Assembly (NCBI GenBank): GCA_965235115.1
Contig: OZ249445.1
Location: 1,054,001 to 1,118,000 of the forward strand
Direction: 5' to 3'
Length of the DNA stretch: 64,000 bases
Origin: Laetmonice hystrix
Taxonomy: Eukaryota
A model generated the notes under the pieces. That model was given only the letters and a program-made list of their open reading frames with translations, searched no databases and was not told the DNA's origin. A program made the translations under genes and the position numbers. Positions 3,521 through 60,485 of the stretch are shown one piece after another; the stretch's first letter is position 1; every line of letters begins with the position of its first letter.

Positions 3521-5597
3521 GCCTCAGATCCTCATGACGAACCTATGGTTCCTTTGATTTTCACCATTTTTTCTCTACATGCAGCTCTCTGATTTGTTTG
3601 AATGACCAGTTCCGTATTGACACAATTTTCTCTGCACCATCTTTGGTATGTTGACACTCCGAGTTTACCTCCAATCAACTTGTAAAACAAAGGCGTTCCG
3701 AAGATGGCTGATGCCGCAAGCAATCATCGATAGCATTTTAAAACGTCTGTTCCCAATCTAGGGCCGCGCTAAAATCGCTATCAAAGAAACGTCTCCGCTA
3801 ACGGAATCAGACTCGCAGCTGCCGCGTTTATAATTCGTTTAAAAGTGAATCGGTGGACGTGTCTTGGTGGGCGGTCGGGAGTTGGTGGGCGACAGGGAGT
3901 TGGTGGCTGACAGGGAGTTGGTGGCTGACAGGGAGTTGGTGGGCGACAGGGAGTTGGTGGCTGACAGTGAGTATGTGAGTTGGTGGTGGTGGTGAGATGG
4001 GTTGAATCAGATGAAGTATGACAAACTTTGTACTTCACTGATGATGGAGACATCATGGCTACCATTAATCTGTCCTTGGAGCTCTGTCCTGGCCTGGTCA
4101 CATCAATAGATGGGGTCGGTCTACACGGGATGCTCATATCATACTCATCGACTGTCGTTTTGGAGTGCTATGATTGTTCCTTTAGCTCTGCCATCCTTTC
4201 ATATTCCCGTCTCTTGACACAGACTCCCTTGGGCGACACCTCCAGATATTTCGGGTGCTACAAAAGTAGCTTTTCCTTTCTGTTAAACTATATCAAGGGG
4301 CCACTTAGGCGCGGTGGATAATTCTGTCAGTAGATATGAATGCCTATAGAAGATGAATGTTTGGCGGTAGCTCGGACCCCGGCTTAAGGTCCTCATCATC
4401 TGATCCAAAGACTTGTCGTAATCCTATTCCCGGCGGATTACCAACACAAAGCACTCTATAGCGTCGCTGTACGCGTAATTCTTCTTCACTTGTCAGCCGT
4501 TTCTTTTCTCTTCTGCTTTTCCCAGATGAACTTTGACTCGGCTGTCCCGATCAATAAACCAATGTGCCTTGCTCTGGTAATAGAAGTCCTTGCAGTGATG
4601 CCGTCCTTTCTGAGTTTAATTTAGGCAGGATTTCGACTGCAGACTTGGTTTGGAATCGTCTAGTCCCTGAACCGATGGTTAAAACATCGAACCACCTGAG
4701 ACGATAAATTCGCTGGTAGATAGACATACCTCTGGAATGATTTAGAAGATGTGTGGTGTGTTGTAGCCACGGTAACACAACCACTCTCAGTAATTTCTTC
4801 TCTGTGGTGAAATGAGTTGACTTACTCTGACGACAACGGCTCGTGGGAGAAAGTATCTGACGACAGTGCCTGTCGTGTTTATAAATAAACAATGACTTTC
4901 TCATCGCTGTGTCTGTGTGTATATTTCAGTGCCGGTATAATGGCAATAAATCAGTTCTGACAACACCATCAGATTACGGATGGCAATCCGGATGTGAACT
5001 TCGTGAAAAACGAGATTAGTGTTTTCCAGTGAGAATATGCTCGGTGACAAAACTATGGTGGTAACGAATACGAACCTTCACAGTCTCTGTGAATTCATTA
5101 ATTCACAGTCCCTGTGAATTCATTAATTCACAGTCTCTGTGAATTCATTAATTTAAGGCGAAAAGTACGCACATTGACTAGGGACCCAATTTAATAACTC
5201 CAAAATGAACGCCACCCTGTGGTCTCGAGGAACTGACGTGTCTGAAGGAGAGGAAATACGCTGCGCAGCCTTCAGCCCGCAGGCCAACTGCAGCGCTCTG
5301 CGGCCGTGCTCATTGGTAGACGGCACAGCCAATGAACACATGATATTGGCAGTTGCCGCGGGCCACCTAGCGAAGGTCAAGTCACGGACAACGACTGGAA
5401 CATGGTAGGTGGCGATTAGAGCCAGCCCTTTCTGAGCAGATCGCAATGAATGACCACGCGACGCTCAGCCTCAAAACAAAAGTTTTGAATATGTGAGAAT
5501 AATGCTGTAGAGGAATCGTGGGTTCCATGTCAATGGAAGTCCCATGTCATCTGGTGGAGGCTGGCATAGTCTGGATAACAACATATTATAGTATGTG

Positions 5598-39988: not shown

Positions 39989-40129
39989 GCACCGGTTATT
40001 TGGGGTTGTCCAATGACGGGGTGGCCCAGTTGGTCGCGACACACAGACACAGATTGTAGAAACCTTGCAGTCAATGCAAGGATGGCGTCCAAATCTGGAC
40101 CTCGCCAGCACGCACCACGTGGTCATCAG

Positions 40130-40495: not shown

Positions 40496-41750
40496 TCATT
40501 GGTCAGCCTTACCACTCAGATCTAGAATATCTTTATCGACGTCCTCACCGGAACCAGACCGTCCTGGTTCCGGTAATACGGTCAGCTCCTCTACCTTAAC
40601 TAGGGGATCTCGTATCTCATCACACTCGCCATCCCTAGCGCTGGAATCAGTCTTTGTGACTTCCTCTTGTGACGGTCGTAAAGGTTTCTCACAGCTCGGA
40701 CCGTTTGCCTTGATGTCCATGATGTCAGAGAGCGTTGATGTCACAGCGACGGTGTCGGTGTCGCCATTGACTGTCGGTGGGGACAGATGCCGGGGGTCGG
40801 ACAGTGTCCCGTTTGGTGGGGACAGATGCCGGGTGTCGGTCAGTGTCCCGTTTGGTGGGGACAGATGCCGTGGGTCGGCCAGTGTCCCGTTTGGTGGGGA
40901 CAGATGCCGGGGGTCGGCCAGTGTCCCGTTTGGTGGGGACAGATGCCGGGGGTCGGCCAGTGTCCCGTCTGGTGGGGACAGATGCCGGGGGTCGCCGTTT
41001 GGTGGGGACAGATGCCGGGGGTCGGCCAGTGTCCCGTTTGGTGGGGACAGATGCCGGGGGTCGCCGTTTGGTGGGGACAGATGCCGGGGGTCGCCGTTTG
41101 GTGGGGACAGATGCCGGGGGTCGGCCAGTGTCCCGTTTGGTGGGGACAGATGCCGGGGGTCGGCCGGTGTCCCGTTTGGTGGGGACAGATGCCGGGGGTC
41201 GGCCAGTGTCCCGTTTGGTGGGGACAGATGCCGGGGGTCGGCCAGTGTCCCGTTTGGTGGGGACAGATGCCGGGGGTCGGCCGGTGTCCCGTTTGGTGGG
41301 GACAGATGCCGGGGGTCGGCCAGTGTCCCGTTTGGTGGGGACAGATGCCGGGGGTCGGCCAGTGTCCCGTTTGGTGGGGACAGATGCCGGGGGTCGGCCG
41401 GTGTCCCGTTTGGTGGGGACCGATGCCGGGGGTCGGACAATGTCCTGTTTGACAGACACCGCTGTTCGACCAGTGTCCCTTTTGACGGAGAAGGACCCAT
41501 GATGACACTCGGTGAGCTGACTCTAAACTCACTCGGCGACACGTCACACTCGTGCCGATCCAAACAGCCATTATTCCCGTCAGGCGTCCATTGGGTAACC
41601 ATGACAACAGATGCCGAATTTTCAAACTCTTTACCGGACGTTGAGGTCACTCTGGGCGTGTCCTTGGGTAATGATATCCGGCGTTTGTGGGCGACTCCAG
41701 GCTTGGCACCTTTCTGACCCTTCCGAATACTCTCCGGGGGGTTGACGAAT
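40496..41750 (-). CDS. ETV6: ETS gene terminal coding exon (RF VNPPESIRKG...KADQ*) with 18 copies of DPRHLSPPNG(TLA)
   Basis: Acceptor ccaattgacAG, phase 2, supplies the conserved terminal RF of the ETS domain. It runs in frame into ORF 40496..41650 and its TGA stop. Confidence 0.8.
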
Positions 41751-44700
41751 CTGTCAATTGGAGGAACATATTAATTTTTTGTTAAAAAAATTAGTCAACT
41801 CTATTTGAGGCATGGCAGTAATTATTTGCCCTCCTCGTTATCTTGCTGCCTCGGTTGTTGCCGGAAGGGCGTCATAGTAACCAATACTGAAAGTGACCTT
41901 GTCATTGACCTTGTCATTGACCTTGTCATTGACCTTGTCATTGACCTTGTCATTGACCTTTTCATTGACCTTTTCATTGTGCCAGGTTGTTACTTTCCTC
42001 ACCTGTACGTCAGCCGGCGGGAGGGCACCTTGACAATGATTGTCATTGTGCCAGGTTGTTATTGTCCTCACCTGTACGTCAGCCGGCGGGAGGGCACCTT
42101 GACAATGATTGTCATTGTGCCCGGTTGTTATTTTCCTCACCTGTACGTCAGCCGGCGGGAGGGCACCTTGACAATGATTGTCATTGCGCCAGGTTGTTAT
42201 TGTCCTCACCTGTATGTCAGCCGGCGGGAGGGCACCTTGACAATGATGTTCATTCTGTAGTAGTAGCGCAGTGCCCGGGAAAGTTTCTCATATGTCATGT
42301 TGGCCCTGTTCTTCTGGCGGCCCCAGAGAGACGCTAGGCTGGCTGGGTTCACGATTCGGAAGATAAACTGGGACTCGTCCTCCCATCGTACGCACGAATC
42401 GTAGGCCGGATCCCGCAGTAACTGGTAGATAAACTCCCACAGCAGTTTAGGGTCGCCTGAAAACAATGTCAGGGTTGTCACAGGTAAACTCCTACAGCAG
42501 TTTAGGGTCGCCTGAAAACAATGTCAGGGTTGTCACAGGTGTAAACACAGGTGAACTCCCGCAGCAGTTTAGGGTCGCCTGAAAACAATGTCAGGGTTGT
42601 CACAGGTGAACTACCACAGCAGTTTAGGGTCGCCTGGAAACAATGTCAGGGTTGTCACAGGTGAACTACCACAGCAGTTTAGGGTCGCCTGAAAACAATG
42701 TCAGGGTTGTCACAGGTGAACTCCCACAGCAGTTTAGGGCCGCCTGAAAACAATGTCAGGGTTGTCACAGGTGAACTACCACAGCAGTTTAGGGTCGCCT
42801 GGAAACAATGTCAGGGTTGTCACAGGTGAACTACCACAGCAGTTTAGGGTCGCCTGAAAACAATGTCAGGGTTGTCACAGGTAAATGTTACGTTAACCGT
42901 GACCCTGTTTATGCTACGTTAACAGTACCCCTGTTTATGTTACGTTACCGTGACCCTGTTTATGTTACGTTAACCGTGACCCTGTTTATGTTACGTTACC
43001 GTGGCCCTGTTTATGTTAGTTAACCATAACCCTCTATGGTAGTGGTAAACCTAACCAGCTGTCGTCATTGTCATCAAGCTGGGAGGACAATACTCACCCG
43101 AGTTTCCATCAACATCGACCCCGTCAGCAGTGAAACAGTCTTCCAACCTCTCAGACGCTGCCTTCACAGGTACTGGGATCTGCATCGGCAGTGACCGCAC
43201 TAGGACGAGAAAGTACCCAAAATAAATAGGTTAAATTTTCATCTAACAGATAATATCACGAGCAATATTCTGGGGTGGGGTGAGAGATAACCTCGACCAC
43301 AGTTGTATTATTATAGATATGACAATGCCTACTTGTTCCTGGCGTTCCTTGGTTCAGTCTGTACGTCACCTCACCAGTAGGTGGCGTTGTAATGACGGTG
43401 GGGAGCAGCGAGTGAACGCCACTGTTGACGACATGGCTGTCGTCTGGTGCCGTGTACTTTCGATGTTCACACCCAGCGTCCCAGTCCTCGTCTGGGTCCT
43501 CGTCCTCGTCTCCCGATATGGACTCCATCAGCCGACCGTCGTACGCCGCGTCTCCGTGGGCTGAGGTTACCATAGCAACACCTGTCGAGTCGTGGCGGGG
43601 AGCCGTTACCATAGCAACCCCCGCCGAGTCGTGGCGGGGAGCCGTTAGCATAGCAACCCCCGCCGAGTCGTGGCGGGGAGCCGTTACCATAGCAACACCT
43701 GTCGAGTCGTGGCGGGGAGCCGTTACCATAGCAACACCCGTCGAGTCGTGGCGGGGAGCCGTTACCATAGCAACTCCCGTTGAGTCGTGGCGGGGAGCCG
43801 TTACCATAGCAACTCCCGTTGAGTGGTGGCGGGGAGCCGTTACCATGGTGACTCCTGACGAGTCGTCTCGGCTTGTGAGCCGAGTGATGTATCGGAAGCC
43901 CTCTGTCAGCGATCTGACTGCCTCCGGTGAGCTGCCAAGTTGATAGTCGCCACACGGTGCGATCGTAATGAACCCTGGAGATGACGGTACTGACAACGTG
44001 CCTGAAATTGCGGTGAGTTCGGCATATACAACTCAACCTCGACCAACTCTACTTTTCCACTGACTTTATTTAAATGGATATGTTATAGCTATATAAATTC
44101 AGCATTTTGTACTCACTCCTCTCCTCGTTGTAACTGTTGGCACGGTCCATCCTTGGTTGTTTAGAAGGGGCCTCAGCGTGATGGTAGCCAGTCGGTGAGG
44201 GTCGCCTCATGGGGACACACGGACCCGACCTGGGCGACCCCGGGGACCGATCCCGGCCCGGGGAACCCTGGGGTGAACGCGAGGTCCCTCGACGCATGTC
44301 CGGAGAGCAGGACGAGGTGGCGGACTGGGGCGATAATTGGGGAGACGACATTGAGTGAAAACGAGGCATGCGATGGCCGTCGTTAGTGACGTCATCGCGG
44401 TGAGGTGACATCTGCGGCGACCTGGACTGGGTGGTTCCGTCAGCTCGTCTGGCGAGATGAGGCGAGAGTTGGGGAGGAGAGGGCGTTCTCCCACCGGAAG
44501 TAGAGCTGGGCACGGCCAGGTGGATGGTGGAGGGCCGCGAGAGGTTGAGAGGAACACCCTGGGGTGTGATCTGGTCACTGCTCAACTCGTCATCCGTCTC
44601 GGTCATGGTCATACAAGCTGAAATCAGAAACCACACATAGTTCTACACATTCTCTAGTTCGAACGGACATATTGGAAAGTTAACGAACGGACATATTGGA

Positions 44701-47700
44701 AAGTTAACAAACGGACATATTGGAAAGATAACGAACGAACATATTGGAAAGTTAACAAACGGACATATTGGAAAGATAACGAACGAACATATTGGAAAGT
44801 TAACGAACGAACATATTGGAAAGTTAACGAACGGACATATTGGAAAGATAACGAACGAACATATTGGAAAGTTAACGAACGGACATATTGGAAAGTTAAC
44901 GAACAACCATATTGGAAAGTTAACGAACGGACATATTGGAAAGAAAGGACTAAGCGATGCAGTGGCCGGTAGGTAAACTGAAAAGCCGTGTTTATAAATA
45001 CGGACCGTCATGGGGACGTGGGCTGGTACGGTAGGGAGACGATGGCAGTGTCGACAATGGGGTCGCTCGTCTAGAGATGTCGTGAGGTGACCCCGGAGGT
45101 GTAGAGAATATGTGATTTAGGCCAAACAAAGTGCCATTTCTCAGATCAAGCGAGATCGCCGGCAGCCCATAGGTTCTGACACCTGGAAAATACATGAGGA
45201 TTATTCAGAGACCTCAAAAAATCAGGGGGGGAGAAAAAACAACCCTCAGCAGTCTGGATCAGGTCATAGCCGTTTTATATATTCATCATTTTTTGTCCAT
45301 GTGGACGTACCGTATGGTCCATGTGGACGTACCGTATGGTCCATGTGGACGTACCGTATGGTCCATGTGGACGTACCGTATGGTCCATGTGGACGTACCG
45401 TATGGTCCATGTGGACGTACCGTATGGTCCATGTGGACGTACCGTATTGTCCATGTGGACGTACCGTATGGTCCATGTGGACGTACCGTATGGTCCATGT
45501 GGACGTACCGTACGAGGGAAATGTCATGCGACCTTTCAGCTGTCTCCACTTCCCTCAACAAGGAAGTTCGTTGTGGCGCGCTGGTTATCACTGAAGAGTT
45601 GTTTGAGATCGATAAAAGATGGCTGGGTGGTCATTCGTATAGATATATACGACGGAGTACGTCACCGTTCACCGTAAATAACTTCTAAAAAGGTGAACTT
45701 TGTCTCATCAATATTGATTAATCGATTGGAAAAATCCACGGACAAGGAGCCGTATGCTTCTTGCTGCAGACTGTGTCGTCACGGCACGCAATCACCGCAT
45801 GCCTATAGTTATATATAAGTGTCGTCACGGCACGCAATCACCGTATGCCTATAGTTATATATAAGCGTCGTCACGGCACGCAATCACCGCATGCCTATAC
45901 AACATAGTTATATAAGTGTAGTGTATCGTCACCGCACGCAATCACCGTATGCCTATAGTTATATAAGTGTTGTGTATCGTCACGGCACGCAATCACCGTA
46001 TGCCTATAGTTATATAAGTGTTGTGTATCGTCACGGCACGCAATCACCGTATGCCTATAGTTATATAAGTGTTGTAACTGAGTGAGAATAAATAACCATC
46101 CTGTTCTCATAGTTTTTGTACAACCAGTTTACTGACAATGCTCCTTTTTTAAGATGTTTCCTTTGGGTACTCTGCGCAATATTTTAACGTTTTCACCGTC
46201 ATGTAGGAACGCCATAAAACCACCAACATAAATTATTTCAAAATTAAAGGACATAAAAACATAATGGCCCGCCCGAGTGCCGTCATTATCACCTAGCAAT
46301 CAAGCAGGAAGTACACAGAGTGATTGTGATCGCAGATTGGGGACGATTGAAGTCGGTATACGATACGATCACAGCGATGTGTTAGTCAAGACGGCGGCGG
46401 TATCAGGTACCAGTTTACGCTGGGCCTCTAGTTGTTAAAGAAATGATCAGGTCTGAGATGGAAACATCACTGACTGGGACACAATCTCAGATATATGGTC
46501 AGGGTTGCATGTCTATGGTTACCACCCGGCCAAAGCTGACAGGGGGAAGGGATGATAAACTGGCCCCGGTTTCAGAAAGGCTCTAAGCAGCAAGCTTCAA
46601 GCTAAGTAGGGCTACGGTGGCCCATGACGACACAGGCACTTTAACTTTCTACATTGATTTTAATGGAAATTTTCACGGCAGTGGAAATATCACAACAGTG
46701 AATATATGACCACCACGGTTAAATTATTATTACCGGGGCCGGGGCGCGAAACCGGGGCCTGGTCCACTGCCGATATGACGAATGGTTTCAGAAACCGGGG
46801 CCTGGTCCACTGCCGATATAACGAATGGTTTCAGAAACCGGGGCCTGGTCCACTGCCGATATAACGAATGGTTTCAGAAACCGGGGCCTGGTCCACTGCC
46901 GATATAATGAATGGTTTCAGAAACCGGGGCCTGGTCCACTGCCGACATAACGAATGTTTTCAGAAACCGGGGCCTGGTCCACTGCCGATATAACGAATGG
47001 TTTCAGAAACCGGGGCCTGGTCCACTGTCGATATAACGAATGGTTTCAGAAACCGGGGCCTGGTCCACTGCCGATGTCAGAAACCGGGGCCTGGTCCACT
47101 GCCGATATAACGAATGTTTTCAGAAACCGGGGCCTGGTCCACTGCCGATATAACGAATGTTTTCAGAAACCGGGGCCTGGTCCACTGCCGATGTAACGAA
47201 TGGTTTCAGAAACCGGGGCCTGGTCCACTGCCGATATAACGAATGGTTTCAGAAACCGGGGCCTGGTCCACTGCCGATATAACGAATGGTTTCAGAAACC
47301 GGGGCCTGGTCCACTATACGAACCACTACGACACGAAAAAGTTGTGTGAGCTACCACAATTTCTAACATGTTCAAAACTTCCGTAGCCTCGCACGAACCT
47401 GCGCGAACCGCTCGCCGAACTGCCAGTTCATGACAGTTCGGAATCATAATCGTCTAGGTGGGAGCGGGTGAAAGTTGCGCCTCGACGAAAAAGGGACGAC
47501 GACTTTTTTTGAGAACTATGTACCCACCTTGTGACGCTATGTACCCACCTTGTGACGCTATGTACCCACCTTGTGACGCTATGTACCCACCTTGTGACGC
47601 TATGTACCCACCTTGTGACGCTATACACGACTGCAGCGTGTTAAAGATGACGTCTCCCACGTTTGTGGCACGGTCGTTGAAGTCGTCCTTTGTGAGCATA

Positions 47701-50700
47701 CACAAGGCTTTGCCTGAAACAAGGCGCACCACGTCAGAATACACAAGGCTTTGCCTGAAACAAGGCGCACCACGTCAGAATACACAAGGCTTTGCCTAAA
47801 ACAAGGCGCACCACGTCAGAATACACAAGGCTTTGCCTGAAACAAGGCGCACCACGTCAGAATACACAAGGCTTTGCCTGAAACAAGGCGCACCACGTCA
47901 GAATACACAAGGCTTTGCCTGAAACAAGGCGCACCACGTCAGAATACACAAGGCTTTGCCTGAAACAAGGCGCATCACGTCAGAATACACAAGGCTTTGC
48001 CTGAAACAAGGCGCACCACGTCAGAATACACAAGGCTTTGCCTGAAACAAGGCGCACCACGTCAGAATACACAAGGCTTTGCCTGAAACAAGGCGCACCA
48101 CGTCAGAATACACAAGGCCTTGCCTGAAACAAGGCGCACCACGTCAGAATACACAGGGCCTTGCCTGAAACAAGGCGCACCACGTCAGAATACACAAGGC
48201 CTTGCCTGAAACAAGGCGCACCACGTCAGAATACACAAGGCTTTGCCTGAAACAAGGCGCACCACGTCAGAATACACAAGGCTTTGCCTGAAACAAGGCG
48301 CACCACGTCAGAATACACAAGGCCTTGGCTAAAACAAGCCGCACCACGTCAGAATACACAAGGCTTTGCCTGAAACAAGGCGCACCACGTCAGAATACAC
48401 AAGGCCTTGGCTAAAACAAGCCGCACCACGTCAGAATACACAAGGCTTCGCCTGAAACAAGGCGTACCACGTCAGAATACACAAGGCCTTGCCTGAAACA
48501 AGGCGCACCACGTCAGAATACACAAGGCCTTGTCTGTAACACGGCGCCCCACGTCAGAACGTGGGGGTAGAAATCCACAGGAGGACTGACCATTACAAAA
48601 TGTGGGGGTGGGAATCAACAGGACTGACCATTACAAAATGTGGGGGTGGGAATCAACAGGACTGACCATTACAAAATGTGGGGGTGGGAATCAATAGGAG
48701 GACTGACCATTATAAAATGTGGGGGTGGGAATCAACAGGACTGACCATTATAAAATGTGGGGGTGGGAATCAACAGGAGGACTGACTATTACGAAATGTG
48801 GGGGTGGGAATCAACAGGAGGACTGAGCATTACAAAATGTGGGGGTGGGAATCAACAGGAGGACTGAGCATTACAAAATGTGGGGGTGGGAATCAACAGG
48901 AGGACTGACCATTATAAAATGTGGGGGTGGGAATCAACAGGACTGACCATTATAAAATGTGGGGGTGGGAATCAACAGGACTGACCATTACAAAATGTGG
49001 GGGTGGGAATCAACAGGACTGACCATTATAAAATGTGGGGGTGGGAATCAACAGGACTGACCATTACAAAATGTGGGGGTGGGAATCAACAGGACTGACC
49101 ATTATAAAATGTGGGGGTGGGAATCAGCAGGAGGACTGACCATTACAAAATGTGGGGGTAGAAATCAGCAGGAGGACTAACCATTCATAGCGAACTTCTC
49201 CAGTTGGACTCCATCCAGAGCGTATTCCTCCACGCACCACGTGATCCAGTCACGTACGTCGTCACGTGACCATAGCTGCGGGTGGCAGCCTGAATGAACG
49301 ACGTCACCATAATATATATGACGTCACCATAATATATATGACGTCACTATAACTGTAATCAGTCTGACTCTCATTGTTGGCAGATCGTGTTTGCTATCAC
49401 CCTGACTTCTTTCATTTACAGGCGGGGAACCTACCGCCAAACCTCCCAAAAGTTGTTCATTTTGATGCGTAGTCAAGTTTATTGTGTTGGGATGCACTCC
49501 TTACCTAGAGCTGGGCATGATGTATTATCAAGTTTACTGTGTTGGGATGCACTCCTTACCTAGAGCTGGGCATGATGTATTATCAAGTTTACTGTGTTGG
49601 GATGCATTCCTTACCTAGAGCTGGGCATGGTGTATTATCAAGTTTACTGTGTTGGGATGCACTCCTTACCTATAGCTGGGCATGATGTATTATCAAGTTT
49701 ACTGTGTTGGGATGCACTCCTTACCTATAGCTGGGGATGATGTATTATCAAGTTTACTGTGTTGGGATGCACTCCTTACCTATAGCTGGGGATGATGTAT
49801 TATCAAGTTTACTGTGTTGGGATGCACTCCTTACCTAGAGCTGGGCATGATGTATTATCAAGTTTACTGTGTTGGGATGCACTCCTTACCTAGAGCTGGA
49901 CATGATGTATTATCAAGTTTACTGTGTTAGGATGCATTCCTTACCTAGAGCTGGGCATGGTGTATTATCAAGTTTACTGTGTTGGGATGCGCTCCTTACC
50001 TATAGCTGGGCATGATGTATTATCAAGTTTACTGTGTTGGGATGCACTCCTTAACTAGAGCTGGGCATGGTGTATTATCAAGTTTACTGTGTTGGGATGC
50101 ACTCCTTACCTAGAGCTGGACATGATGTATTATCAAGTTTACTGTGTTAGGATGCACTCCTTACCTAGAGCTGGGCATGATGTATTATCAAGTTTACTGT
50201 GTTGGGATGCACTCCTTACCTAGAGCTGGGCATGATGTATTATCAAGTTTACTGTGTTGGGATGCACTCCTTACCTATAGCTGGGCATGATGTATTATCA
50301 AGTTTACTGTGTTGGGATGCACTCCTTACCTAGAGCTGGACATGGTGTATTATCAAGTTTACTGTGTTGGGATGCATTCCTTACCTATAGCTGGGCATGA
50401 TGTATTATCAAGTTTACTGTGTTGGGATGCACTCCTTACCTATAGCTGGGCATGATGTATTATCAAGTTTACTGTGTTGGGATGCACTCCTTACCTATAG
50501 TTGGACATGATGTATTATCAAGTTTACTGTGTTGGGATGCACTCCTTACCTATAGCTGGGCATGATGTATTATCAAGTTTACTGTGTTGGGATGCACTCC
50601 TTACCTATAGCTGGGCATGATGTATTATCAAGTTTACTGTGTTGGGATGCACTCCTTACCTATAGCTGGGCATGATGTATTATCAAGTTTACTGTGTTGG

Positions 50701-53700
50701 GATGCACTCCTTACCTATAGCTGGGCATGGTGTATTATCAAGTTTACTGTGTTGGGATGCACTCCTTACCTATAGCTGGGCATGGTGTATTATCAAGTTT
50801 ACTGTGTTGGGATGCACTCCTTACCTATAGCTGGGCATGATGTATTATCAAGTTTACTGTGTTGGGATGCACTCCTTACCTATAGCTGGGCATGATGTAT
50901 TATCAAGTTTACTGTGTTGGGATGCACTCCTTACCTAGAGGTGGGCATGATGTATTATCAAGTTTACTGTGTTGGGATGCACTCCTTACCTAGAGCTGGG
51001 CATGGTGTATTATCAAGTTTACTGTGTTGGGATGCACTCCTTACCTATAGCTGGGCATGATGTATTATCAAGTTTACTGTGTTGGGATGCACTCCTTACC
51101 TAGAGCTGGGCATGATGTATTATCAAGTTTACTGTGTTGGGATGCACTCCTTACCTATAGCTGGGGATGATGTATTATCAAGTTTACTGTGTTGGGATGC
51201 ACTCCTTACCTAGAGCTGGGCATGATGTATTATCAAGTTTACTGTGTTGGGATGCACTCCTTACCTAGAGCTGGACATGATGTATTATCAAGTTTACTGT
51301 GTTGGGATGCATTCCTTACCTAGAGCTGGGCATGGTGTATTATCAAGTTTACTGTGTTGGGATGCACTCCTTACCTATAGCTGGGCATGATGTATTATCA
51401 AGTTTACTGTGTTGGGATGCACTCCTTACCTAGAGCTGGGCATGGTGTATTATCAAGTTTACTGTGTTGGGATGCACTCCTTACCTAGAGCTGGACATGA
51501 TGTATTATCAAGTTTACTGTGTTGGGATGCACTCCTTACCTAGAGCTGGGCATGATGTATTATCAAGTTTACTGTGTTGGGATGCACTCCTTACCTAGAG
51601 CTGGGCATGATGTATTATCAAGTTTACTGTGTTGGGATGCACTCCTTACCTATAGCTGGGCATGGTGTATTATCAAGTTTACTGTGTTGGGATGCACTCC
51701 TTACCTAGAGCTGGACATGGTGTATTATCAAGTTTACTGTGTTGGGATGCATTCCTTACCTATAGCTGGGCATGATGTATTATCAAGTTTACTGTGTTGG
51801 GATGCACTCCTTACCTATAGCTGGGCATGATGTATTATCAAGTTTACTGTGTTGGGATGCACTCCTTACCTATAGTTGGACATGATGTATTATCAAGTTT
51901 ACTGTGTTGGGATGCACTCCTTACCTATAGCTGGGCATGATGTATTATCAAGTTTACTGTGTTGGGATGCACTCCTTACCTATAGCTGGGCATGATGTAT
52001 TATCAAGTTTACTGTGTTGGGATGCACTCCTTACCTATAGCTGGGCATGATGTATTATCAAGTTTACTGTGTTGGGATGCACTCCTTACCTATAGCTGGG
52101 CATGGTGTATTATCAAGTTTACTGTGTTGGGATGCACTCCTTACCTATAGCTGGGCATGGTGTATTATCAAGTTTACTGTGTTGGGATGCACTCCTTACC
52201 TATAGCTGGGCATGATGTATTATCAAGTTTACTGTGTTGGGATGCACTCCTTACCTATAGCTGGGCATGATGTATTATCAAGTTTACTGTGTTGGGATGC
52301 ACTCCTTACCTAGAGGTGGGCATGATGTATTATCAAGTTTACTGTGTTGGGATACACTCCTTACCTAGAGCTGGGCATGGTGTATTATCAAGTTTACTGT
52401 GTTGGGATGCACTCCTTACCTATAGCTGGGCATGATGTATTATCAAGTTTACTGTGTTGGGATGCACTCCTTACCTAGAGCTGGGCATGATGTATTATCA
52501 AGTTTACTGTGTTGGGATGCACTCCTTACCTATAGCTGGGCATGGTGTATTATAAAGTTTACTGTGTTGGGATGCATTCCTTACCTATAGCTGGGCATGA
52601 TGTATTATCAAGTTTACTGTGTTGGGATGCACTCCTTACCTATAGCTGGGCATGGTGTAATATCAAGTTTACTGTGTTGGGATGCACTCCTTACCTATAG
52701 CTGGGCATGGTGTATTATCAAGTTTACTGTGTTGGGATGCACTCCTTACCTATAGCTGGGCATGGTGTATTATCAAGTTTACTGTGTTGGGATGCACTCC
52801 TTACCTATAGCTGGGCATGATGTATTATCAAGTTTACTGTGTTGGGATGCACTCCTTACCTATAGCTGGGCATGATGTATTATCAAGTTTACTGTGTTGG
52901 GATGCACTCCTTACCTAGAGCTGGGCATGGTGTATTATCAAGTTTACTGTGTTGGGATGCACTCCTTACCTAGAGCTGGGCATGATGTATTATCAAGTTT
53001 ACTGTGTTGGCATGCACTCCTTACCTAGAGCTGGGCATGATGTATTATCAAGTTTACTGTGTTGGGTTGCATTCCTTACCTATAGCTGGGCATGATGTAT
53101 TATCAAGTTTACTGTGTTGGGATGCATTCCTTACCTATGCTATAGTTGGACATGATGACGGTGACTCATAGGCTTCTTCTTTTTTGCTTGCTAGTCAGAT
53201 TCTTTGAGTGTTATACTGGGCCAGTTCAGTATCCTGATCCCCCCACCCCCACCCCACCTACACACACACTTTCAAAAGAAACTGACGCCCCTGGACGGTG
53301 TATTGTAAAGTTTAAGTTACTGAGATGTTTTGTTACTCCTTACCCAAGGCTGGCAGTCCCCGGGCAGGCCCGCTGTGTTCGGTGGACATCGATCTGTCCA
53401 GAGTCACGGCTGGAGGTCTCTGCCACTGATGCATCTCGTGTACTGTCAGGCCGGTCAGCTGAAAGTGAATGAAAGAACCACAGTTAGAGACACAAGGCTG
53501 ATTCTGCTGTGAACTCATGACTCAAGGACTAATATACACAAAGTAGGAAGCACGGGTCAGTGCGACCTTTATACTGGTTTGGGACTGACCCAGTAGAAGC
53601 AGTTAGATGTTGGAGGTTGGACGATGGCTCAGTCTGAGATTGGTGGACTCAGCGGTTCGTGTTCAGTCTCCCGGGCACTGGGAGGGGAGGGGGTGTGGAG

Positions 53701-58589: not shown

Positions 58590-60155
58590 TATTATAGTCA
58601 ATGTAGGGGCCCTTGAGTGGCCATCCTATACCTCATAGTCAATGTAGGAGCCGTTGAGTGGCCATCCTATACCTCATAGTCAATGTAGGAGCCGTTGAGT
58701 GGCCATCCTATACCTCATAGTCAATGTAGGAGCCGTTGAGTGGCCATCCTATACCTCATAGTCAATGTAGGAGCCGTTGAGTGGCCATCCTATACCTCAT
58801 AGTCAATGTAGGGGCCCTTGAGTAGCCATCCTATACCTCATAGTCAATGTAGGAGCCCTTGAGTGGCCATCCTATACCTCATAGTCAATGTAGGGGCCCT
58901 TCAGTGGCCATCCTATACCTCATAGTCAATGTAGGGCCCTTGAGTGACCATCCTATGCCTCATAGTCAATGTAGGAGCCCTTGAGTGGCCATCCTATACC
59001 TCATAGTCAATGTAGGAGCCCTTCACTGGCCATCCTATACCTCATAGTCAATGTAGGAGCCCTTGAGTGGCCATCCTATACCTCATAGTCAATGTAGGGG
59101 CCCTTGAGTGGCCATCCTATACCTCATAGTCAATGTAGGAGCCCTTGAGTGGCCATCCTATACCTCATAGTCAATGTAGGGGCCCTTCAGTGGCCATCCT
59201 ATACCTCATAGTCAATGTAGGGGCCCTTCAGTGGCCATCCTATACCTCATAGTCAATGTAGGGGCCCTTCAGTGGCCATCCTATACCTCATAGTCAATGT
59301 AGGGGCCCTTCAGTGGCCATCCTATACCTCATAGTCAATGTAGGAGCCCTTGAGTGGCCATACTATACCTCATAGTCAATGTAGGAGCCCTTGAGTGACC
59401 ATCCTATACCTCATAGTCAATGTAGGGGCCCTTCAGTGGCCATCCTATACCTCATAGTCAATGTAGGGGCCCTTGAGTAACCATCCTATACCTCATAGTC
59501 AATGTAGGGGCCCTTGAGTGACCATCCTATACCTCATAGTCAATGTAGGAGCCCTTCACTGGCCATCCTATACCTCATAGTCAATGTAGGGGCCCTTCAG
59601 TGGCCATCCTATACCTCATAGTCAATGTAGGGGCCCTTGAGTGGCCATCCTATACCTCATAGTCAATGTAGGGGCCCTTCAGTGGCCATCCTATACCTCA
59701 TAGTCAATGTAGGGGCCCTTGAGTGACCATCCTATACCTCATAGTCAATGTAGGGCCCTTGAGTGGCCATCCTATACCTCATAGTCAATGTAGGAGCCCT
59801 TGAGTGGCCATCCTATACCTCATAGTCAATGTAGGAGCCCTTGAGTGACCATCCTATACCTCATAGTCAATGTAGGGGCCCTTGAGTGACCATCCTATAC
59901 CTCATAGTCAATGTAGGGGCCCTTCAGTGGCCATCCTATACCTCATAGTCAATGTAGGGGCCCTTCAGTGGCCATCCTATACCTCATAGTCAATGTAGGG
60001 GCCCTTGAGTGGCCATCCTATACCTCATAGTCAATGTAGGGGCCCTTGAGTGACCATCCTATACCTCATAGTCAATGTAGGGGCCCTTGAGTGACCATCC
60101 TATACCTCATAGTCAATGTAGGGGCCCTTGAGTGACCATCCTATACCTCATAGTC
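58590..60155. repeat. 41-bp tandem array, ~38 copies
   Basis: CTCATAGTCAATGTAGGGGCCCTTGAGTGGCCATCCTATAC repeated. Confidence 0.97.
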
Positions 60156-60485
60156 ACCCCTCACCCTCACCTCACCCCACCTCACCCCCGTCACCCCCAC
60201 CTCACCCCACCTCACCCCCGTCACCCCCACCTCACCCCACCTCACCCTCACATCACCCCCACCTCACCCCACCTCACCCTCACATCACCCCCACCTCACC
60301 CCACCTCACCCTCACATCACCCCGACCTCACCTTCACCTCACCCCACCTCACCTCACCCTTACATCACCCCCACATCACCCCCACCTCACCACACCTTCC
60401 CCCCCACACCTCACTCCCTTCACCCCCACCTCCCCCACCCCACCCCTCACCTCCCCACCCCACCCCACCCCACCTCACCCCTCCC
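60156..60485. repeat. C-rich low-complexity tract (CCTCACCCCA-like)
   Basis: Read directly. Confidence 0.9.

Follow-up and report, generated by a model that had tools for sequence, protein, structure and literature searches.

The minus strand of the window, as we call the whole 64,000-nt stretch of DNA analysed here, carries a gene of the ETV6/Yan type that encodes both a PNT and an ETS domain. Pfam identified SAM_PNT in exon 4 (E 2.7e-6) and Ets in the ETS exon (E 2.4e-31), and exons 3 and 4 matched ETV6 proteins in tblastn. The N-terminal PNT (SAM) and C-terminal ETS domains form one protein, a single open CDS joining them with 1091 open codons from E2 to E10 and a sole, terminal stop codon. 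The top full-length matches, with 68-71% identity in the ETS domain, are ETV6-like or pokkuri-like proteins from the genera Haliotis, Patella, Gigantopelta, Littorina, Mizuhopecten and Lingula. Judged by the annotation of these closest relatives, the gene would belong to the ETV6/Yan (pokkuri) subfamily of ETS factors. The nearest relatives of ETV6 and HSP70 were found in molluscs, annelids, a nemertean and a brachiopod (Lingula), with no ETS match above 71%. No Rfam match was obtained between positions 40000 and 54000. COX1 carries 12 TGA codons.

Authentic exon borders were set by homology, by RNA-type joints and by comparison with a distant orthologue (69% ETS identity), whose ETS exon has an identical donor border and an acceptor in the matching place, the exon itself being unchanged. 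RNA-type evidence refers to the contigs of run X4, which has no recorded type but behaves as RNA; the four public runs found all come from one sample, and the records list none of them as RNA. The X4 contigs contain the GT..AG joints 41750/42210, 42455/43097, 43199/43333 and 44617/45006 as well as the E3-E4 junction at 47714, and one contig links E7, E8, the ETS exon and E10. At least nine coding exons lie inside the window, and the model corrected with these contigs comprises 17 mapped junctions.

All features of the gene are on the minus strand. Coding exon E2 (53344..53458) is predicted from its splice consensus and open frame; the start codon lies farther upstream, as does the first coding exon. 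The first half of the PNT domain is encoded by E3 (49182..49289), located by tblastn to ETV6 proteins, whose 3′ end (...GAAGTTCGCTATGAAT) forms the free end of the RNA-type contig connected to E4. The second half lies in E4 (47612..47713), which holds the SAM_PNT match; the contig piece stops at 47714 with E3 sequence beyond, a 1-nt ambiguity, the first base of E4 being 47713. The linker exon E5 (45006..45182) is bounded by the joint 44617/45006 and, upstream, by a putative acceptor based on consensus and frame, while the Ser/Pro-rich linker exon E6 (44117..44617) has its acceptor at an RNA-type joint and a predicted donor. E7 (43333..44001), an open frame with a coding minisatellite inside, ends at the donor joint 43199/43333, and E8 (43098..43199) has RNA-type joints at both ends. 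The ETS domain is encoded by E9 (42210..42456; joints 42455/43097 and 41750/42210). The last coding exon, E10 (40496..41750), has its acceptor at an RNA-type joint, the contig going on 335 nt into the exon, up to a coding array, and its frame is open to the stop codon at 40496-40498. An earlier, sequence-only reading of this DNA had recognised the PNT/ETS gene. In the corrected model, E5 (45182-45006), missed by a sequence-only reading, is added, and the 39-bp array at 43566-43846 is exonic and coding. An alternative model with an intron at this array, the array start serving as donor and the acceptor lying 10 nt past its end, is ruled out, as it breaks the frame and RNA-type contigs read through the array.

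Five splice junctions of the gene form, on the minus strand, the exon-side end unit of a minisatellite: the exon 3 donor, the exon 4 acceptor, the exon 4 donor, the ETS-exon acceptor and the ETS-exon donor. The E3 donor array (48582..49181) holds 15 units of 38/41 bp; TRF places it at 48582-49173 (38 bp x15.1), and by eye a diverged first unit reaches the junction at 49181. This first unit begins at the true GT and has AATG in common with the exon end, and the array offers 13 decoy donors (AATG, then gtcagt across the splice site). In the E4 acceptor array (47698..48559; TRF 41 bp x21.0), which displays a polarity gradient, the unit comprises a branch-point-like CTGAC and a pyrimidine tract, along with CAG and 15 exonic nt, and AG is intact in 20/20 decoy acceptors. 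One intron is almost wholly occupied by these two arrays, first the donor array with its 13 decoys, then the acceptor array with its 20. The E4 donor array (47516..47624; TRF 21 bp x5.2) is made of 100% identical copies with four decoy donors, the use of each of which would add 7 in-frame codons. The ETS-exon acceptor array (42432..42882; TRF 55 bp x8.0) repeats a module of CTGAC, pyrimidine tract and CAG with 24 exonic nt, and has an in-frame stop within 7-26 codons after each of its seven decoy acceptors. Finally, the unit of the ETS-exon donor array (41974..42254; TRF 69 bp x4.1) combines 39 nt of exon with 30 nt of intron, and its three decoy donors are of equal predicted strength, inclusion bringing a stop.

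The splice dinucleotide is kept in all 47 decoy sites, which match the true sites in strength by a simple consensus score, and 43 of the 47 lead to a stop or a frameshift. The exon part per unit amounts to 4, 15, 11, 24 and 39 nt in the 38/41-, 41-, 21-, 55- and 69-bp arrays, respectively, and an exon share of 0.05-0.76 of the unit argues against a fixed breakpoint at the splice site. The longest words common to the five units measure 5-8 nt and correspond to splice consensus only. Searched against the whole genome, the 69-bp and 41-bp units match only at C11:1.096 Mb and C11:1.1017-1.1026 Mb, respectively; for these two units, the origin is the gene's own locus and not a dispersed repeat. Much of this anatomy had been proposed from the letters alone and is confirmed: the places and unit lengths of the five arrays (TRF), the make-up of each unit as splice signal plus a piece of exon with the true junction terminal, the lack of relationship between units, and the location of all five arrays beside the PNT and ETS exons (Pfam, tblastn). 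The claim that copies differ by substitutions holds for four arrays (90-95% matches) but not for the identical copies of the 21-bp array.

At the four of five arrayed junctions that can be judged from the X4 contigs, the exon-nearest site is used, the E4 donor being uncovered; at the ETS exon, the RNA-type joints take the last acceptor and the first donor. No decoy joint was found in these contigs, from which rare forms and those degraded by NMD drop out. Judged from contigs, in which minor isoforms are invisible, splicing of the mRNA is normal at four of the five junctions in spite of the decoys. Choice of the exon-nearest donor may follow 5′-to-3′ scanning as in human F7, and that of the exon-nearest acceptor is assumed to reflect exon definition. 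The locus represents a natural experiment on how the spliceosome picks one among identical sites, acceptors as well as donors, and a warning to gene predictors run on such genomes.

Two arrays lie within exons, both with 39-bp units: one in E7 (43566-43846; 39 bp x7.2, 13-residue repeats), which the RNA-type contigs enter and leave directly, and one in E10 (40776-41451; 39 bp x18). The exon-internal arrays of the gene consist only of such in-frame units in linker or tail regions. A 3.7-kb array of 55-bp units in intron 2 was considered as a sixth junction case, having GGTAAGGAGT in common with the exon 2 donor; it was not counted because its likeness to post-donor sequence was not above that of shuffles (P 0.2).

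Tandem arrays make up 47.1% of the window, in agreement with the ~45% previously estimated. The window lies at C11:1.05-1.12 Mb, about 1 Mb from the start of a chromosome-scale contig, the assembly comprising 35 of these. At two other loci less than 1 Mb from chromosome ends, arrays cover 34-51%, whereas 30 interior loci have a median of 1.7% and never exceed 16% (Mann-Whitney P 0.003). TTAGGG repeats are present at both ends of C1, so that contig ends are chromosome ends at least on this contig. The arrays fit a regional feature of chromosome ends. Searches for adaptin and V-ATPase returned no genes near chromosome ends.

Comparable structures are known from other animals. Mirage minisatellites of amphioxus occur in Adh3, the globins BflGb6/9, PGBD5 and troponin C (PMC3087553; PMC3902484) and were described in 2002 by Canestro et al., as cited in PMC3087553. 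As here, the amphioxus unit spans the exon-intron boundary at donors or acceptors, measures tens of bp to ~160 bp and is present in few to many copies; AG/GT is kept in most copies, splicing of the mRNA is normal, the host genome is minisatellite-rich, and edge units are less homogenised than inner ones. Unlike amphioxus, the present host is not a cephalochordate, as its ETV6 and HSP70 kin indicate, five arrays are present in one gene, with a donor array followed by an acceptor array in a single intron, and a link to chromosome ends is seen. In 2026, 'exon stuttering' or 'sequence stuttering' was reported on chicken dot chromosomes, where >90% of the source sequences are no more than 1 nt away from an exon border and 3.4% of dot-chromosome introns are concerned (PMC12954441). 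Both here and in chicken, local gene-specific tandem expansions fill introns, a subset copying the exon edge with its donor or acceptor, and are restricted to a repeat-dense, recombination-rich part of the genome. The chicken case differs in its vertebrate host, in its location on GC-rich microchromosomes rather than ordinary chromosome ends, in repeats described as less regular and in a demonstrated population length variation.

The 37-bp VNTR in intron 7 (IVS7) of human F7, in which the most upstream donor wins (PMC1557585), resembles the donor arrays: its first repeat spans the exon 7/intron 7 border, so that the true donor is followed by identical pseudo-donors, which stay silent. However, F7 has just one array, such structures being scarce in its genome, and 5′-to-3′ scanning was shown there with 50 minigene constructs, whereas only the outcome is seen here and acceptor arrays exist alongside the donor arrays. 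Mouse pseudoautosomal genes, located in a terminal, highly recombining region, likewise have minisatellite-filled introns, which passages of the report (bioRxiv 10.1101/2022.03.26.485930) attribute to frequent recombination and unequal crossover; unlike here, most arrays belong to one family (mo-2) and junction-spanning units do not appear in these passages. The five arrays, head-to-tail repeats of a minisatellite-size unit (~10-160 bp) in 4-21 copies with 90-100% matches, are mirages or exon stuttering, a phenomenon already described in amphioxus, human F7 and chicken, hence no new kind of element. Their presence in a spiralian host indicates that it is not a chordate peculiarity and that it goes with minisatellite-dense genome compartments. 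Besides this spiralian occurrence, the locus adds some value through its unusual concentration, with five arrays and 47 decoys within a single developmental transcription-factor gene, and through the RNA-type contigs, which take the exon-nearest site at the four judgeable junctions.

We consider it probable that a repeat-packed chromosome end gave rise to these 'mirage' minisatellites, mostly as a tolerated by-product. Tandem duplications of 20-70 bp would arise at essentially arbitrary positions in the repeat-prone zone near the chromosome end and would then expand through unequal exchange or slippage. With the arrays removed, the introns at the affected sites collapse to 109, 147 and 218 nt. 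Because the original introns would have been so short (~110-220 nt), a large share of the duplications touching an intron should also cover a splice junction. Such a duplication would be harmless as long as the spliceosome keeps the exon-adjacent copy, the first donor or the last acceptor, and would therefore persist and grow into the intron; wholly exonic duplications would be removed by selection, except for those that keep the frame and fall in a disordered region. What we infer is how the duplications arise, that the arrays are neutral and how the exon-nearest site is chosen. One of the alternatives raised by the sequence-only reading, local duplication with tolerated outward growth, fits the regional arrays, the locus-specific units, their arbitrary phase, the 39-bp in-frame exonic arrays and junction hits near random placement in short introns. 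Set against the by-product explanation are the locus-wide excess described below, the location of all five arrays at conserved-domain exons, and RNA evidence that comes from the contigs of a single run of unrecorded type.

Uniform re-placement of each array within its own intron gave 2.98 +/- 1.36 expected junction hits versus 4 (TRF) or 5 (by eye) observed, with P(>=5) of 0.13. For 59 HSP70, myosin and CCT introns, 3 hits were observed versus 1.98 expected; pooled, the own-intron excess is not significant (P 0.09-0.20). Under a locus-wide uniform null, the window showed 4 hits versus 1.01, 32 other loci 6 versus 3.06, and all loci 10 versus 4.06, a ~2.5-fold excess whose P of 0.007 is optimistic, as array births are clustered, the arrays abutting one another. 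The overlap with junctions, which the sequence-only reading had proposed to compare with re-placed positions, is thus enriched over the locus-wide null but not significantly within introns. In unrelated genes (HSP70 family, myosins, CCT), 8 clear and 2 doubtful junction-spanning arrays were counted at 254 exon edges. The gene's introns hold 13 arrays per 2.6 kb of collapsed sequence versus 65 per 37.7 kb in the whole window, which suggests that pure random placement may be too simple.

The locus-wide excess and this roughly threefold density would favor exon-intron junctions as preferred birthplaces of minisatellites, the association being mutational and not just tolerated chance, as would the donor side, where 7 arrays extend across the junction, with only 1 beginning at 0-50 nt and 6 at 50-100 nt into the intron. 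Possible causes would be exon-edge chromatin, transcription-replication or R-loop stress at splice sites, or splice-consensus microhomology. We hold this reading to be unlikely. The pooled own-intron re-placement argues against it, as do the variable phase of the junction within units and the short introns of the control genes, which hold 5 arrays versus ~5 expected from length; moreover, clustered births make the P values optimistic, and the locus-wide null includes unknown exons and constrained DNA, which dilute it. There is likewise only a slim chance that junctions in recombination-prone chromosome ends are true hot spots of minisatellite birth, the ~2.5-fold excess being real, and/or that the ladders, with as many as 20 perfect decoys, are used at a low, copy-number-dependent rate. 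In that case, the output of a dosage-sensitive ETS repressor would be set by array length, a fast-evolving dial.

The strength of the 47 decoys, 43 of which lead to a stop or frameshift, the composition of each acceptor unit as a full module (CTGAC, pyrimidine tract, AG) and the presence of five of five arrays at PNT and ETS exons might suggest regulation, in which unproductive NMD splicing or slowed splicing sets the dose of a dosage-sensitive factor. This seems quite improbable, as does the related proposal that the in-frame 21-bp ladder would yield isoforms with 0-4 extra heptapeptides. The RNA-type contigs, blind to rare or NMD-degraded forms, contain no decoy joint, such arrays are also present in housekeeping genes (HSP70 family, myosins, CCT), and normal splicing is reported for the published mirages (PMC3087553, PMC3902484). 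Being young and homogenised (90-100% identity), the arrays allow no claim of conservation, and the ETS exon of the distant orthologue has no arrays. As a description, the earlier wording (splice sites 'repeatedly amplified into decoy arrays') is fair; the purpose it implies is hypothetical.

Assembly artefacts, from stutter or mis-joined reads, are highly improbable: tandem arrays are hard to assemble and the contig word depth of the 69-bp unit (992 versus ~58 in the flanks) does not match its 4 assembled copies, but unit substitutions follow higher-order patterns, with a polarity gradient in the 41-bp array, two more runs of this sample gave contigs that cover most array bins with elevated word depth, RNA-type contigs enter the coding arrays, structures of this kind occur at many loci, and the assembly has 35 chromosome-scale contigs with telomere repeats on both C1 ends. 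The raised depth of the 69-bp unit and within-array joints in DNA contigs hint at arrays of other lengths, but short-word contigs collapse repeats.

Tandem Repeats Finder (TRF) identified 70 non-redundant tandem arrays, which together occupy 47.1% of the 64-kb window (~45% in the sequence-only reading), and five of these arrays lie exactly where that reading had described splice junctions of an ETV6/Yan-like gene amplified into tandem decoys. The junctions concerned flank, as it had claimed, the exons of the two conserved domains: these exons matched the Pfam profiles Ets (E 2.4e-31) and SAM_PNT (E 2.7e-6), and tblastn searches with ETV6-type proteins gave matches at exactly the PNT and ETS exons plus the start of the last exon.

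All five arrays are described on the minus strand, that of the gene. The first PNT exon (E3) ends in ...CTATGAATG|gttagtcc, and its donor array (48582-49173) consists of 38/41-bp units placed 3′ of the exon, with AATG|gtcagt at the unit end. The second PNT exon (E4) is bordered on its 5′ side by an acceptor array (47698-48559) with twenty extra copies of a 41-bp unit including 15 nt of exon, and on its 3′ side by a donor array with four extra copies of a 21-bp unit including 11 nt of exon. The 5′ border of the ETS exon reads ...ttgttttcag|GCGACCCTAAACTGCTGTGGGAG and is preceded by seven extra copies (42432-42882) of a 55-bp unit in which ~31 nt of intron (CTGAC and a pyrimidine tract) are combined with the initial 24 exon nt. 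The exon ends in ...GACATACAG|gtgaggac, followed by three extra copies (41974-42254) of a 69-bp unit formed by the last 39 nt of the exon and 30 nt of intron. The five units are indeed unrelated, their longest common word not exceeding 8 nt and the common words corresponding to splice consensus, and the two units tested have no other occurrence in the 627-Mb genome. The description of the copies as differing by substitutions applies to all of these arrays except the 21-bp one, whose copies are perfectly identical. The 41-bp array is polar, its ten exon-side units having 0-1 mismatches from the true unit and its distal units up to 5. At 42032-42130, the 69-bp donor unit reaches a contig word depth of 992 in sequencing run X1, for only 4 units in the assembly and no other genome occurrence; this excess may reflect either another haplotype with a much longer array or a collapsed assembly.

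Scanning for further copies of the five junctions yielded 47 decoys (13 for the E3 donor, 20 for the E4 acceptor, 4 for the E4 donor, 7 for the ETS-exon acceptor, and 3 for the ETS-exon donor), with consensus scores equal or nearly equal to those of the true sites. The AG is intact in all acceptor decoys, and every acceptor unit carries, 12-19 nt 5′ of this AG, a CTGAC matching the branch-point consensus, so that the units constitute complete 3′ modules. Use of the decoys is predicted to introduce an in-frame stop or a frameshift everywhere except in the 21-bp ladder, where each step would add seven codons.

The sequence is present in four sequencing runs of a single sample, none of which is recorded as RNA. 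The contigs of one of them, X4 (58 Mb of contigs), omit 41751-42209, 42456-43097, 43200-43332, and 44618-45005, four segments with GT..AG ends on the minus strand. The two larger runs from this sample lack these joints, and we therefore read X4 as RNA-derived. Its joints revealed that, of the four 69-bp donors, the ETS exon uses the first and, of the eight 55-bp acceptors, the last; they also define an exon at 43199-43098 and the end of another at 45006, both on the minus strand. Furthermore, a piece of an X4 contig with its last aligned base at 47714 carries the end of exon 3 (...GAAGTTCGCTATGAAT). This base lies one beyond the first exon base, 47713, because the G fits either side, and the contig thus links the first exon 3 donor with the last acceptor of exon 4. 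No joints at decoys are listed among the X4 contigs. The proposal that the arrays might tune productive versus NMD splicing has so far found no support. The exon 4 donor, the E2-E3 junction, the E6 donor, and the E7 acceptor were placed solely by consensus and frame.

The resulting CDS, from exon E2 to the stop, measures 3276 nt with a sole, terminal stop. It includes two unrelated 39-bp minisatellites on the minus strand, at 43566-43846 (E7, 7 copies) and 40776-41451 (E10, 18 copies), which the open frame on these borders identifies as coding and in frame, with 13 residues per unit, in the linker and the C-terminal tail, respectively. The RNA-type contigs of X4 cross the E7 array uninterrupted and enter the last-exon array. 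These two arrays are the only ones located entirely within exons of this gene, and both units are multiples of three.

To what extent the arrays prefer junctions was estimated by placement tests in which each array was collapsed to one unit. The introns bearing junction arrays, at present 1468 nt (intron 3), 641 nt, and 459 nt long, collapse to 109, 147, and 218 nt, respectively, and a 40-70-bp duplication touching an intron of this collapsed size has a ~45-50% chance of covering a junction. Under uniform re-placement within the own collapsed intron, 2.98 ± 1.36 junction hits were expected in this gene, versus 4 seen with TRF borders (P(≥4) 0.34) and 5 by eye (P(≥5) 0.13). For the controls (59 introns and 17 arrays of HSP70-family, myosin, and CCT genes, with borders from consecutive HMM matches, splice consensus, and frame), 1.98 hits were expected and 3 seen, leading to a pooled P of 0.20 (7 hits) to 0.09 (8 hits). 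Under uniform re-placement over the whole collapsed locus, 1.01 hits were expected and 4 seen in the window (P 0.02), 3.06 and 6 in 32 control loci (P 0.08), and 4.06 and 10 in the pooled set (P 0.007), all these P values being optimistic because arrays often abut and their births are not independent (47698-48559 and 48582-49173; 42432-42882 and 42885-43033), and because unannotated exons dilute the locus-wide null. The two null models thus bracket the junction association, from no more than chance predicts to an enrichment of about 2.5-fold. Two observations favour an arbitrary placement: among 13 junction arrays, exon sequence makes up between 0.05 and 0.76 of the unit (KS versus uniform, P 0.054), and in a tally of the control introns, the number of arrays in short introns does not exceed that predicted from intron length.

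Unrelated arrays are often back to back, 0-22 nt apart (in addition to the two pairs just cited, 41894-41979 with 41974-42254 and 58594-60156 with 60159-60481), a pattern suggesting that arrays are born at the borders of those already present and weakening tests that treat arrays as independent. On the donor side of 67 introns (window and control loci L006-L036), 7 arrays span the donor, 1 begins 0-50 nt inside, and 6 begin at 50-100 nt; a gap in array starts just inside the donor is possible, on small numbers.

Junction-spanning arrays are general in this genome: in the 32 control loci, clear cases were found at 8 of 254 domain-internal exon edges, including a CCT donor (70 bp x17), an HSP70-family acceptor (54 bp x11.6), and a myosin donor (34 bp x13.9), and two more are apparently decayed. 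In the CCT locus L033 (C1:73.11 Mb, minus orientation), arrays of 26 bp x49 and 21 bp x55 (locus positions 21-1276 and 4207-5336) end 27-37 nt 5′ of exons, with units resembling the real acceptor region (e.g. tttgatgag...ggta for tttgatgag...ag|GTA), and may be decayed junction arrays. Another control locus, L016 (C1:61137740-61138380), shows two adjacent myosin-head exon matches on the same profile positions (117/121-152), which look like mutually exclusive alternative exons.

The array share reaches 51% and 34% at two control loci 0.66 and 0.78 Mb from chromosome ends, hence 34-51% at 0.66, 0.78, and 1.05 Mb when the window (C11:1,054,001-1,118,000) is included, versus 1.7% (median) and at most 16% at 30 more interior loci (Mann-Whitney P 0.003, window included, the gradient from the chromosome end resting on 33 points, i.e. 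the 32 control-gene loci and the window). This identifies a repeat-dense terminal compartment comparable to bird dot chromosomes or the mouse PAR. The assembly comprises 35 contigs, including a mitochondrial one in which TGA encodes Trp, and contig C1 bears TTAGGG repeats at both ends.

Among 1.8 billion representatives, the best ETS matches, at 68-71% identity, come from gastropods, bivalves, and Lingula and are proteins of ETV6-like or pokkuri-like type. The large HSP70 exon shares 77-79% identity with proteins of annelids, molluscs, nemerteans, and brachiopods and 83-88% with ENA assemblies. An amphioxus origin of the sequence was rejected on these matches, which place the animal among the spiralians. 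On the ENA contig giving the best fragment match (ETS identity 69%), 1.5 kb separates the PNT and ETS exons, the ETS-exon donor border is the same (...TTACAG|gtacc), and the acceptor (...cacatgcag|CAGACACTCGC) falls at the corresponding point, just 5′ of the conserved LLWEF. No tandem array was found within 5 kb of its PNT and ETS exons. By this comparison with one distant orthologue, the arrays are lineage-specific additions to a conserved exon structure.

Together, the use of exon-nearest copies at four junctions, the arbitrary phase, and the restriction of both tested units to this locus support the other half of the sequence-only reading, tolerated local duplication, for which we propose four steps. 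First, a short tandem duplication would occur, probably between a few bases of microhomology. Array lengths lie within 0.2 unit of a whole unit number in 30 of 48 indel-free arrays (window and L006-L037) versus 19 expected, which fits an origin in a single clean duplication involving microhomology of 0-8 nt; in the exon 3 array, AATG|gt stands at the start and AATG closes each unit. Secondly, array structure suggests expansion and homogenisation by unequal exchange or slippage. Thirdly, the spliceosome takes the exon-nearest copy, as at four junctions in the X4 contigs, leaving the mRNA unchanged. Exon definition via the downstream donor and exonic enhancers is established, and we assume that it governs the choice of the last acceptor. 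The donor choice matches that of the human F7 intron 7 VNTR, where 5′-to-3′ scanning was shown (PMC1557585). Finally, arrays disturbing exons would be removed by selection, the survivors being intronic arrays, outward-growing junction arrays, and coding arrays of in-frame 39-bp units within disordered regions.

The same phenomenon is represented, besides this human parallel, by the amphioxus "mirage" minisatellites of Adh3, globins, PGBD5, and troponin C, genes that are reported to splice normally (PMC3087553; PMC3902484), and by chicken "exon stuttering", seen in 3.4% of the introns on dot chromosomes, where the source sequence lies ≤1 nt from the exon border in >90% of cases and the arrays vary strongly in length (PMC12954441). 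Mouse pseudoautosomal genes, with minisatellite-filled introns in a terminal recombination-rich region (bioRxiv 10.1101/2022.03.26.485930), parallel the regional side. The locus adds a dense example from a further animal lineage and is not a new kind of element; it lends itself well, as a natural test case, to the study of splice-site choice.

Two further repeats of the window deserve mention. A 3.7-kb array in intron 2 (49473-53138) contains 66 units of 55 bp carrying AG|GTAAGGAGT, with a 10-nt identity to the exon 2 donor located 205 nt upstream. Similarity to the sequence after this donor did not exceed that of shuffles (P 0.2), which gives no support to a derivation from the exon 2 junction. 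The ~50-bp segment 46560-46608 (ctggccccggtttcagaaaggctctaagcagcaagcttcaagc...) is a very abundant dispersed element. In the DNA contig sets its word depth is ~27,000, where flanks present in single copy have ~58; in the RNA-type set it is ~270. The element has no Rfam match, and the adjoining 43-bp array holds its complement, aaaccggggcc.
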